A stretch of DNA of 64,000 nucleotides from Scyliorhinus canicula (lineage: Eukaryota). The notes below the pieces were generated by a model. It had not been told where the DNA came from. It was given only the letters and a program-made list of their open reading frames with translations, and did no database searches. Position numbers and translations under genes: made by a program. Of the stretch, positions 2,393 to 52,896 are shown piece after piece (the stretch's first letter is position 1; each line of letters begins with the position of its first letter). Location: contig NC_052160.1 in NCBI RefSeq assembly GCF_902713615.1, forward strand, positions 137,806,737 through 137,870,736, read 5' to 3'.

Positions 2393-2722
2393 CTTCACAG
2401 ACACAGACGGCTTCGATAGTGGTGAGAGCTGCAGTGGGAGAAACCATCACAGTGGGATGTCCACAGGCAGAAAGGTACAAAAGAAACAATGTCATCTGGT
2501 GGTGCAAGGCAACTTGGGGAAGTGGGTGCGATCAGATATCGAGCATTGATGGGCAGAAAGTCAGAAATGATTATCGAAGAACATCGATTACTGATACCAA
2601 TGGCAAGATTTCAGTAACCATACAAAAACTTGAAGAGAAAGATACAGGAACATACTGGTGTGGACTAGAAGATAAACAAACATTCAGTGTTTCAGATGTT
2701 ATATTGCTGAAGGTTTTCACAG
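2393..2722 (+). CDS. Gene 1 exon: Ig V-type domain 1 of a CD300/pIgR-like receptor
   Basis: 330-nt phase 1-1 exon bounded by caacAG and GTaaga; encodes VGC...IWWC-x7-C...DTGTYWC (canonical V-set cysteines plus the extra CD300/pIgR/TREM-type disulfide pair); paralog at 37199-37528. Confidence 0.85.
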
Positions 2723-2949
2723 GTAAGAATATTTCAGAAGATTAATTCTAGCGTTGATAATGTGGTTGGGCTGCAGTAACACTGCTGCTGTGTGAGCTCA
2801 GACTATGAAAGGATTATCACAGCTCGTTATGTGCAAGTAAAGACCTCCCATCCTCCCATTTCTACCCATTTCCATCTCTAAACATACTTCCCCCTTACAC
2901 ATCGACAAACCTAAAATCAAATTCCACCAATGTCTCTTTTTAAAATTAT

Positions 2950-4080
2950 TTTACTGTATGTTGGCATCGCTGACTAGACCAGCATTTCTATCCCTAAGTA
3001 CCCTTAAGAAGGGGGTGATGAGCACGATAAAAATGCTGGAAAAAGCATCGACCGACCAGACCGACCAAATGGTCGCCCGGAGGCTGAACTCAAGAGGTCG
3101 CTGGCGACCCAGGGGAGCCGGATGGGGAAGGTCGAGGACCAAGAAAATCAGTCAAGGTGACAGAACATTCGAATAGTGGACCTGCCGGAGGGAATCAAGG
3201 GCAGGGACCCGACCGACTACATGGCTCAAATTCTGGGCACCCTAGTGAGGAGGGACAGCTTCCGCAAGCCACCGGAGATTGACAGGGGTCACAGGTCACT
3301 CAGACCAACGCCCAAGGCAGAGTGGCAGCCGAGAGCGGTCATAGCCAAGCTGCAGAAGTACCAGGGCCGGGAAAGGATCCTTTACTGGGTCAGACAGTCA
3401 AAGTCATGTAACTGGGAGGGACATGAAATTAGAATCTACCAGGACATTGGGGCGGACCTGGCAAAGCACTGGCGGAATTTAATCAGGGCAAAGTCGGCCC
3501 TATATAAAATCAAAGTCAGATTTGAGATGTTATTCCCAGCCAGACTCTGGGTTACATATCAGGGTGAGGAACATTATTTTACTGACCTGCAGAGGCGGAC
3601 AAGTCCATCCATAAGACCCGTTTGGACAGACAGCAGAGAGGCAGCGATGAGGCAGACACAGAGGAAGCGGAGGAAACTAATGGAGAATTTTGGACGGGGC
3701 TACATCACCTCGTGGTGAACAGGGGAACCAGCTCATGGGAAGGAGAGGGCGAGGGCACCAGAGAGCAGGAGAGGGTGAGGAGGAGATAGCAGGGTCATCA
3801 GCAGAGCGGGTGTGGGGGTGGGTAAGATGGACCCTGAGCGGGGAGGACACCATACCAGCAGGAAAGGCAGCAACAGGAACTATGAGGGAGAGGGGGGCAG
3901 CAGCACATCTCCCAGGAGACAGCATGTGGCGGGGTGGGGGTGCGGGGGGAGACACGGCGTTGAGGGGCGGGGGAGTTAGACAGAAGAGGAGGGAGATGGG
4001 GGTTGAGGGTAGGGGGGTGCTCAGCGAGGGGGGGAAACAAAACCACAGGGGGAACAAAACGGTAAGAGTGGAAAGGCTCT
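2950..4080 (+). mobile_element. L1-clade LINE ORF1 fragment (degenerate)
   Basis: ORF 3176-3718 (PEIDRGHRSL...PRAVIAKL...IRIYQDIGADLAK...LFPARLWVTY) resembles the L1 ORF1p RRM/CTD; G-rich inter-ORF sequence follows. Confidence 0.75.
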
Positions 4081-4098
4081 AGACTGGCTTCAGCAGGT

Positions 4099-4325
4099 TG
4101 ATGCACGATCAATTGAACAAAGCCTAGAATTGGATACAACTGAGGCTTTATTGCTCTAAGATGTGTGGCCTCCCACAGCAGATGGCAAAATGGCTGCCAC
4201 ATGGAGGACACACATATTTATACTCCGTCTACTGGACGGAGCCAGCAGGCAGGGACTACCAACATACCTGTAGTACAGGTCCTACCATAAATCACCTAAT
4301 AGAGGTGCAACAGTGGTTTACCACA
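4099..4325 (-). mobile_element. Solo LTR (227 bp)
   Basis: Minus strand TGTGGT...TGCATCA termini, TATAAA and AATAAA; 4-bp TSD AGGT; same family as 58189-58415. Confidence 0.8.
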
Positions 4326-4553
4326 AGGTGGTGTGTGTTTGAGGTGCAGAAGTCAGGGGTGGAGAGAGCCATCGTCGGGGATCTGGGCTCAAGGTTTGGT
4401 GGCATCTTTTGTGGCCTCTAGACTCGGCCCGAGATGAGGATGAGAGGGATGTTGGCCCGAGGCCAGAAATGGGTGAGGGTGGTGGGGAGAGATTCTTCGG
4501 ATTATTTGATATGGGGGAAGGAGGTGGGGGATAGTATCGAAAACTAGACTCTG

Positions 4554-4970
4554 TGTAAGATTCAGAACACAAAATACAGGTTAACTTCAACAGTTCATTT
4601 ATTTACTTGCAGCAAGGGGGGACTGCACCGAAGCAAAGATTAGGGTGTGAATCTGAAGTATAACAGTTCTCCTGGGATATTTATACACTGGAGTAAACAA
4701 GTAACACATGCCTTAAAATCCCTGACTCAGCTTAAAATCCTAAAAGACCAACATTTAACTTGAAATTGTGACTCCTACTATGCCAAGATGCACTCAAGCT
4801 GTATCGACAATGTATCAATACATTCCTATGACAATGTGGGGAAACAGATGGATAGAGATAAGGAAGTGACACTACAATACTCAGGAAAGGGGACTCTCCG
4901 ACCTATTCTTGCCCCCTCAGCAGTATTGTGAGCCCACCACAAAGATGGCCAAGTATCCCATCATGCACTG
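4554..4970 (-). mobile_element. Probable truncated LTR of another family
   Basis: Minus strand ends ...CTTACA and carries TATAAA and AATAAA; other end obscured by the adjacent Gypsy LTR. Confidence 0.4.
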
Positions 4971-50992: not shown

Positions 50993-51573
50993 CTGCTGCT
51001 GCTGCTGGTGGAGCTGCTGGTGCTGCTGGTGGAGCAGCTGGTTCTGCTGCTGCTGCTGCTGGTTCTGCTGCTGCTGCTGCTGGTGGAGCTGCTGGTGCTG
51101 CTGGTGGAGCTGCTGTTTCTGCTGCTGGTGGAGCTGCTGCTTCTGCTGCTGCTGCTGCTGCTGCTGGTGGAGCTGCTGGTTCTGCTGCTGCTGCTGCTGG
51201 TGGAGCTGCTGGTTCTGCTGCTGCTGCTGGTGGAGCTGCTGGTTCTGCTGCTGCTGCTGGTGGAGCTGCTGTTTCTGCTGCTGGTGTTGGCAGAGCTGCT
51301 GCTTGTGTTCTGGTGCTGCTGCTGGAGCTGCTGGTGGAGCTGCTGGAGCTGCTGGTGGAGCTGCTGTTTCTGCTGCTGGTGTTGGCAGAGCTGCTGCTTG
51401 TGTTCTGGTGCTGCTGCTGGTGCTCCTGCTGGTGCTGCTGGTGGAGCTGCTGTTTCTGCTGCTGCTGTTGGCAGAGCTGCTGCTTCTGTTCTGGTTCTGC
51501 TGCTGGAGCTGCTGGTGGAGCTGGTGGAGCTGCTGGTTCTGCTGCTGGAGCTGCTGGTGCTGGCAGTGCTGCT
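50993..51573. repeat. Interrupted (CTG/CAG)n-rich repeat, ~580 bp
   Basis: GCT runs interspersed with GGT, GGA and TCT triplets; internal higher-order duplication. Confidence 0.92.
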
Positions 51574-51686
51574 GTTTGTGTTTTCAAATGGATTTTGTCA
51601 GTTCAGGTAAAATGACAGAGAATAGCACAAGGACTGCAAGATACCCAACCCTCATTGAGCAGGGATGAAACCTAAATATCCAATGA

Positions 51687-52033
51687 GGGCAGCACGGTAG
51701 CATTGTAGATAGCACAATCGCTTCACAGCTCCAGGGTCCCAGGTTCGATTCCTGCTTGGGTCACTGTCTGTGAGGAGTCTGCGCATCCTCCCAGTGTGTG
51801 CGTCGGTTTCCTCCGGGTGCTCCGGTTTCCTCCCACAGTCCAAAGATGTGCAGGTTAGGTGGATTGGCCATGATAAATTGCCCTTAGTGTCCAAAATTGC
51901 CCTTTGTGTTGGGTGGGGTTACTGGGTTATGGGGATAGGATGGAGTTGTTGACCTTGGGTAGGGTGCTCTTTCCAAGAGCTGGTGCAGACTCGATGGGCT
52001 GAATGGCCTCCTTCTGCACTGTAAATTCTATGA
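51687..52033 (+). mobile_element. V-SINE (HE1-like), full length
   Basis: tRNA head, V-domain, CR1-type tail. Confidence 0.88.
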
Positions 52034-52720
52034 ATGATGGAAAAATGTTACATGTCATAAAACGACATTCGCAAAATGGCAAAGGAAGTTTGTGAAAAAG
52101 TTTTAAATGCTTCCATGAGAAGGGAGACATGAGATGGTTTGGGGCAGAGTCAGAGAGAGAAACAGATTTATGTTGTAGAAACAAAGCTCAGGGGAGTCAG
52201 CGAAATGTTTATTTCAAAGTCAAAATTTAACTTCAAATTGAGTATAATCAGCTCCAATCAGGATTGTCTCTAACAGTGTGTTTTATATTACACAGTTACC
52301 AATGGATTTCCACAACCCATGTCTTACAAGTAGCAAACAAATCTGTAAAGTATCAATTTCTGACAACTATCATCGACTGTAAACTTAATAATAACAATAA
52401 TCTTTATTTGGTTAGGTTCGCATACCCTCAGTCTAGTTCCTCTTTACACACCCTGGATACCAATTCACAGATTCCCATCCCTCGAATTTTAAAGGATGTG
52501 TTTGAATGAATTTCCTGTGTAAAGCACCAAGAGGGTTATTTATTTTATTAATACAAATTACAGCAAAAAGCAAAACAACCAGATGTCCAAATTGAAAATA
52601 TATTTTCAAAGAGAATATCTTTACTGAATATCGTAATGTGAGAATAGTCGGCGAACAAGAGATCATTTCCTCAAGTTGCAACCATTGGCATTTACACAAA
52701 CTATGTTGTGAAGCAGTGTG

Positions 52721-52790
52721 ATTGGTCAACTTCTCTTATCCTGTACGTGTTAGGCAGATATTTCTAGTTCGAGGAGGAAGGAAATGCTTC
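52721..52790 (+). promoter_or_regulatory. Gene 3 putative proximal promoter
   Basis: ATTGG 52721 and CTTATC 52735 conserved; ETS site reads GAGGAAGG, AP-1-like site reads TGCTTCA. Confidence 0.4.
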
Positions 52791-52856
52791 ATCGCAGATC
52801 TTTTGAACGATACAGAGACTCTTGTACTGAAACCTGTGGAAACTGTCACTGGGAGC

Positions 52857-52896
52857 ATGGTTTTTACTGCATTGCTGTTCCTCACTTTGATATCAA
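52857..52896 (+). CDS. Gene 3 leader exon MVFTALLFLTLIS
   Basis: Paralog of 30527-30566 with intact ATG and GTAAGA donor. Confidence 0.72.

Follow-up and report, generated by a model that had tools for sequence, protein, structure and literature searches.

Introduction

Clusters of paired activating and inhibitory receptors of the immunoglobulin (Ig) superfamily are a well-known kind of system, with mammalian CD300 as one of its examples, and in zebrafish the PIGRL or expanded "PIGR" clusters comprise about 25 genes coding for proteins of two to six domains (PMC4016189, PMC13337447). For cartilaginous fishes, the clearnose skate MDIR genes are described, as far as their citation in PMC3031540 goes, as a multigene family that resembles CD300, TREM/TLT and the polymeric Ig receptor (pIgR) and has activating and inhibitory forms. 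Akula et al. 2014 found no PIGR homologues in shark genomes (PMC4016189), a 2026 review sees PIGR-type receptors as absent from cartilaginous fishes and raises the question of how Ig is transported in them (PMC13337447), and the J chain of sharks is considered to have polymerisation as its only role (PMC10801876, PMC4279169). Here we analyse a stretch of 64,000 nucleotides (nt) from the catshark Scyliorhinus canicula (NC_052160.1, positions 137,806,737 to 137,870,736; referred to as the window and numbered from its first letter), which holds part of an array of tandem receptor genes. With good confidence, we regard these paralogues as type I membrane receptors of the CD300/pIgR V-set group in cartilaginous fishes and the copies in the window as being of activating type; most likely, they form the activating arm in a paired family of receptors that is spread across the cartilaginous fishes.

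When compared with mammalian CD300, the catshark family is alike in its V-set domains with an extra C-C' disulfide (C-x7-C), its tandem clustering, its pairing of activating members (charged helix, short tail) with inhibitory ones, which carry immunoreceptor tyrosine-based inhibitory motifs (ITIMs), and in that CD300 gives the highest per-domain scores. CD300, however, has a single V domain, mostly on a mucin-like stalk, while the catshark proteins have two V domains and a stalk of roughly 10 residues, and it differs from them also in that their charged residue is an Arg which sits in the helix's outer third. With pIgR, be it the mammalian five-domain or the teleost two-domain form (5F1S), they share a chain of CD300-type V domains with one exon per domain; teleost pIgR is closest in domain number, and pIgR provides the best whole-chain matches by sequence and by fold. 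Yet pIgR has an uncharged transmembrane (TM) helix followed by a long tail for sorting and transcytosis, rather than an Arg in the helix and a 13-residue tail, and is encoded by a single or low-copy gene, not by a multi-copy array on one chromosome with variable V1 domains. Zebrafish PIGRL, which we liken to the array from literature descriptions, is similarly a lineage-specific tandem expansion of receptors which carry two or three pIgR/CD300-type V domains, albeit a separate one in another lineage. Skate MDIR, likened by description only and from the part of the literature cited above, is a published multigene family of a cartilaginous fish with both signalling forms; a search started from a little skate member of the catshark family (P0060), limited by word matching and length range, returned no Raja eglanteria MDIR and only "pIgR-like" models. 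TREM and NKp44, finally, have a V domain of the same broad group and a charged helix (which in their case pairs with DAP12) but differ by their single domain, by Lys in place of Arg and by weaker sequence matches.

Exon layout of the array

The gene content of the window, which is retrotransposon-rich vertebrate DNA, consists of members of the receptor family and transposons only. Exactly four V-set exons, two of V1 and two of V2 type and all on the forward strand, were located by tblastn with the V exons and by a six-frame scan for F-strand motifs; no further V exon was found in the window by either approach (tblastn to E 10). All four match Pfam V-set with E values from 1e-9 to 1e-12, and they sit in a repeated series made up of a leader exon (40 nt), V1 (330 nt), V2 (327 nt), a stalk micro-exon (31 nt), a TM exon (107 nt) and a tail exon with the stop codon (20 nt). 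All internal exon borders in genes 1 and 2 are AG...GT, and the repeated exon order and phases reported in an earlier note on this DNA, which had been made from the letters alone, are borne out by the exons as located here.

Three genes, all on the forward strand, touch the window, and gene 2 is the only complete one. Its exons are the leader at 30527..30566 (MIITALLFLTLIS plus 1 nt), V1 at 37199..37528, V2 at 41158..41484, the stalk micro-exon at 42478..42508, the TM exon with an Arg in its helix at 43287..43393 and the tail exon at 44263..44282, followed by AATAAA at 44496. When spliced (40+330+327+31+107+20 = 855 nt), they encode 284 amino acids (aa) without internal stop, and this protein is identical (100% over 284 aa) to XP_038675792.1 of S. 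canicula ("polymeric immunoglobulin receptor-like"), with which the model agrees exon by exon from the leader onwards and whose RefSeq gene spans the same 13,756 bp (30527..44282). The intact 284-aa protein of the earlier note is hence an accurate prediction. Upstream of the leader, a conserved region (30293..30526) aligns with 52614-52856 in front of gene 3, similarity ending further upstream, and it probably represents promoter and 5' untranslated region. Gene 3 is present with its leader exon at 52857..52896 (MVFTALLFLTLIS plus 1 nt), which like that of gene 2 starts with ATG and ends in A ahead of an intron opening with GTAAGA. Its last position is the end coordinate given in the earlier note, and the exon coincides with the annotated start of XP_038675784.1, whose N-terminus it encodes; this protein is the product of the following RefSeq gene, which begins 22,330 bp past the start of gene 2 (52857); since this gene spans 32.5 kb, its other exons lie outside the window.

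As for gene 1, its five downstream exons are intact: V1 at 2393..2722 (330 nt, phase 1-1; Pfam V-set E 1.3e-12), V2 at 20451..20777 (327 nt, phase 1-1; Pfam V-set), the stalk micro-exon at 21614..21644 (31 nt; GRPNGSNDTS, a peptide identical in RefSeq paralogues), the TM exon at 25885..25991 (107 nt; KIWTIFRWLLF...) and the tail exon at 26605..26624 (20 nt; VLQASK and stop), which has a splice acceptor and is followed by AATAAA at 26839. In both gene 1 and gene 2 this AATAAA lies about 215 nt past the stop codon. No leader of gene 1 was found within the window, where the gene thus spans 2393-26624. Self-comparison aligns 2130-2875 with 36938-37681 (91% DNA identity), 19964-21761 with 40661-42625 (93-95%) and 25441-27494 with 42843-45166 (87-91%), and the exon repetition between genes 1 and 2 is a segmental duplication. 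The view that the array has at least three genes holds in so far as three genes touch the window, although one of them lacks a leader there and another is represented by its leader only.

The earlier note had also considered the array easy to miss and had named an existing annotation of the cluster as something that would speak against its account. NCBI in fact already models gene 2 exactly, as well as gene 3, which makes these genes hard to overlook, and RefSeq describes the cluster by its "polymeric immunoglobulin receptor-like" models. For S. canicula these are ten consecutively numbered entries (XP_038675784 to XP_038675793, nine of the ten with 284 aa) together with one 792-aa model, which agrees with the idea of an expanded cluster. 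The genes themselves are already known through automatic RefSeq annotation, and our finding adds no gene.

Membrane helix and receptor types

The protein encoded by gene 2 is laid out as a signal peptide, a membrane-distal V1 domain, a V2 domain, a stalk that is short and has sites for N-glycosylation, one TM helix and a 13-residue tail; between copies V1 varies and V2 is conserved. [quoted passage not shown] A W-x-(I/P)-x-R-W helix together with a short tail defines this activating type, which is present in catsharks, Mustelus, stingrays (Hypanus, Hemitrygon) and elephant shark (TWDILRWIFFGVLALC). An inhibitory type, whose ectodomain matches that of the activating one, combines an uncharged helix with a long tail that bears two ITIMs (ITYSTV-like and VEYSTL-like) and is found in Scyliorhinus torazame, Carcharodon, Cetorhinus, Pristiophorus, Heptranchias, Pristis, Amblyraja and Hemiscyllium, examples being P0168 (S. 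torazame), P0169 (Carcharodon), P0026 (Pristis) and the tail of the 792-aa S. canicula model (P0178). No inhibitory TM or ITIM exons were found in the window.

V1 would bind the ligand. By analogy with CD300, TREM, NKp44, KIR and Fc-alpha-RI, the TM Arg would pair with an Asp in the helix of an adaptor that bears an ITAM (DAP12, FcR-gamma, CD3-zeta or the like), which would give rise to an activating signal, and the ITIM-bearing relatives may counter this signal, much as in CD300, TREM, KIR and other paired systems. With the Arg in the outer third (here residue 6 of some 23 in the helix), FcR-gamma or CD3-zeta would be more usual partners than DAP12, which is a weak pointer to the adaptor. The W-x-(I/P)-x-R-W motif is kept from catshark (window exons 43287-43393 and 25885-25991) via stingrays to elephant shark (P0036, P0046, P0184), and it spans a split across cartilaginous fishes of some 400 million years. 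Such conservation suggests, on comparative grounds, that there may be a dedicated, old adaptor partner.

At the C-terminal end of the coding region, an alternative tail of 20 residues, read from an acceptor just past the TM exon (near 43431), was ruled out because it is the 20-nt exon that ends the proteins of Mustelus and S. canicula. TM-less forms are predicted among the paralogues: XP_038675787.1 skips the 107-nt exon and models of S. torazame use a shifted acceptor, the TM-less C-termini of P0002 and P0161 (S. torazame) and P0162 (S. canicula) being due to the TM exon being either left out or translated in a different frame. These could be secreted isoforms or model errors.

Relationship to CD300 and pIgR

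When the V exons are compared with Pfam V-set and V1 with known proteins, much as the earlier note had advised for the spliced protein, V-set is matched and the relatives are the "polymeric immunoglobulin receptor-like" proteins of many sharks and rays (HMMER with V1; word-indexed searches). Relatives in sharks, rays and elephant shark are in line with the proposed cartilaginous-fish family and, judged from these similarities, the family is common to cartilaginous fishes. Outside this group, the nearest single-domain matches bear the automatic name CMRF35-like molecule 1 in platypus, turtles, lizard and paddlefish, and a single-domain match in sturgeon is auto-named "pIgR-like". Among PDB entries, per-domain sequence matches are highest to CD300A, CLM-6 and CLM-1 (42-46 bits), as compared with 20-32 bits for the best single pIgR domains (D1, D4, D5), 25-31 bits for NKp44 and 25 bits for TLT-1; it is on these per-domain scores that we rank CD300 over pIgR. 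Whole-chain totals favour pIgR for the sole reason that it has five such domains.

The cysteines of WWC-x7-C and FLC-x7-C align with those of pIgR D1, D4 and D5, and the F-strand motifs recovered by the scan (DTGTYWC, ETGAYCC, DEGEYWC) are of the D/ExGxY(W/C)C type. V1 of gene 2 has YCC in place of YWC, as do S. torazame proteins, and V1 of the gene 3 protein (P0165) is without the second Cys of the C-x7-C pair. An AlphaFold2 model built from 19 family sequences (mean predicted local distance difference test score of 80) consists of two tandem V-set domains and a helix (240-275), its top fold matches being pIgR ectodomains, namely that of human and the two-domain one of teleosts (5F1S), and its neighbours in the ESM Atlas belong to "pIgR-like" and "CD300-like" clusters. 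Taken with the V-set hits, the sequence matches to CD300 and pIgR structures and the C-x7-C and F-strand motifs, this substantiates the original placement of the genes in the CD300/pIgR group.

Variation of V1

When gene 1 is compared with gene 2, identity is 88% in the V1 exon as against 94-96% in the introns that flank it, and non-synonymous changes in V1, at 34 of 252 sites, are more frequent than mismatches in these introns, at 21 of 412 (Fisher p = 2e-4). V2 is 96% identical and diverges like its own introns. Across nine S. canicula sequences, variable positions make up 37% of V1 and 17% of V2, and they are concentrated in the B-C, C-C' and F-G regions. One DNA pair and the protein comparisons are thus suggestive of V1 evolving faster than its flanking introns. 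Fast change of this kind suggests a variable ligand, provided by a pathogen or by a polymorphic host molecule.

Ligand, role and gene status

Several points weigh against seeing the window genes as the activating arm of a paired family. The support for expression and splice junctions comes from RefSeq models and the orthologous Mustelus protein; no adaptor was identified, a literature search on shark DAP12 being without useful result, and Akula et al. 2014 report no FcR-gamma in sharks, albeit from older assemblies (PMC4016189). With regard to V1, the ratio of non-synonymous to synonymous change (dN/dS) between genes 1 and 2 is 2.2 but not significant when the two rates are compared alone (p = 0.15), so the selection signal depends on the intron comparison and on one gene pair. 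In addition, gene 1 is possibly not independent, its leader being absent from the window and its V exons being used in the six-domain RefSeq model.

As to what the receptors recognise, they may, although we are inclined to doubt it, sense lipids (phosphatidylserine, phosphatidylethanolamine, ceramide) on dead cells or microbes in the manner of CD300 and zebrafish PIGRL. Single-domain similarity is highest to CD300A, CD300C-like and CD300LF, and the nearest relatives outside the cartilaginous fishes carry CMRF35-like names, both of which would fit; a conserved lipid ligand, however, is not expected to drive V1 faster than introns.

Somewhat less probable still is a scenario in which V1 and V2 of gene 1 serve as domains 3 and 4 of a six-domain inhibitory receptor, namely the 792-aa RefSeq model, and in which the stalk, TM and tail exons of gene 1 are unused relics. 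In this model, six V exons taken from three tandem genes are strung together and joined to an ITIM tail encoded outside the window, and the V exons of gene 1 correspond exactly to residues 233-449 of the 792-aa protein (V1 to 233-341, V2 to 342-449). In keeping with such a use, gene 1 has no leader in the window and no separate RefSeq 284-aa model runs across 20527-30526, the interval which holds its stalk, TM and tail exons. No RefSeq 284-aa protein is more than 91.5% identical to gene 1. Moreover, as all V exons are of phase 1-1, any chain of them stays in frame and real modular splicing would be allowed. For the 792-aa model to hold, on the other hand, an intron longer than 43 kb would have to pass over all of gene 2 and the leader of gene 3, which is typical of automatic over-joining in tandem arrays; the stalk, TM and tail exons of gene 1 are intact, their splice sites follow the consensus and the AATAAA is conserved; and the leader of gene 1 is to be expected outside the window anyway, given that its V1 begins 2.4 kb into the window and that the leader-to-V1 intron of gene 2 measures 6.6 kb. 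To our minds, the model is more likely an over-joined automatic prediction than a real long receptor.

That the genes are cartilaginous-fish counterparts of pIgR or of the Fc-alpha/mu receptor, acting as Fc or transport receptors for polymeric IgM or other shark Ig, is improbable despite the top whole-protein matches, which in sequence and fold are to pIgR (5F1S included), the name "polymeric immunoglobulin receptor" given by NCBI to an elephant shark member and the listing of a shark Ig transport or Fc receptor as unknown in reviews (PMC13337447), because the 13-residue tail and charged helix do not resemble pIgR with its need for a long sorting tail, the genes occur in multiple copies whose V1 changes fast, CD300 scores above any single pIgR domain and the J chain of sharks is considered not to sustain secretory transport (PMC4279169, PMC10801876). 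We give equally little credence to a version in which the family provides the missing Ig (Fc) receptors of cartilaginous fishes, with a two-domain ectodomain of pIgR/Fc-alpha/mu type that would bind IgM, IgW or IgNAR and a signal that would pass through an ITAM adaptor, in fishes to which the literature ascribes neither PIGR-type nor classical Fc receptors.

Returning to an activating arm of a paired family as the preferred reading, a receptor family of this type that includes activating as well as inhibitory members and whose range takes in elephant shark and catshark is in conflict with the published absence of PIGR-type receptors, and our literature search found no paper that describes the catshark receptor family in sharks. 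What retains interest is this discrepancy between annotation and literature, together with the deeply conserved activating helix motif and the fast-evolving V1. The family members are candidates for testing whether sharks have Ig-binding receptors of the pIgR/CD300 type and for finding the adaptor partner of a membrane motif that is conserved across cartilaginous fishes.

Transposons and repeats

An uninterrupted open reading frame (ORF) of 934 aa, the ORF2 (endonuclease and reverse transcriptase) of a long interspersed nuclear element (LINE), occupies 21965-24769 on the forward strand within the gene 1 intron between micro-exon and TM exon, and this element may have been active recently. Two related pol regions of Ty3/gypsy type (reverse transcriptase, RNase H, integrase; 73% identical) lie at 8387-11203 and 47549-50504, both on the forward strand, one of them inside the 17.7-kb intron between V1 and V2 of gene 1. 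On the reverse strand, a further LINE (60398-63385) has an ORF1 of GDSL-esterase type followed by endonuclease and reverse transcriptase pieces of a broken ORF2, a layout which we take to be that of the CR1/L2 group. The region of the gene 2 leader is flanked by an inverted repeat of about 1.5 kb (27623-29137 and 34730-36489; 86-91% identity), parts of which match a short repeat at no fewer than six, that is at least six, other places in the window, so that the inverted repeat is at least partly transposon-derived. Tandem repeat arrays occur at 14021-14972, 31480-32415, 50993-51577, 54501-54958 and 57505-58143, the last of which includes a run of N (57812-57995).

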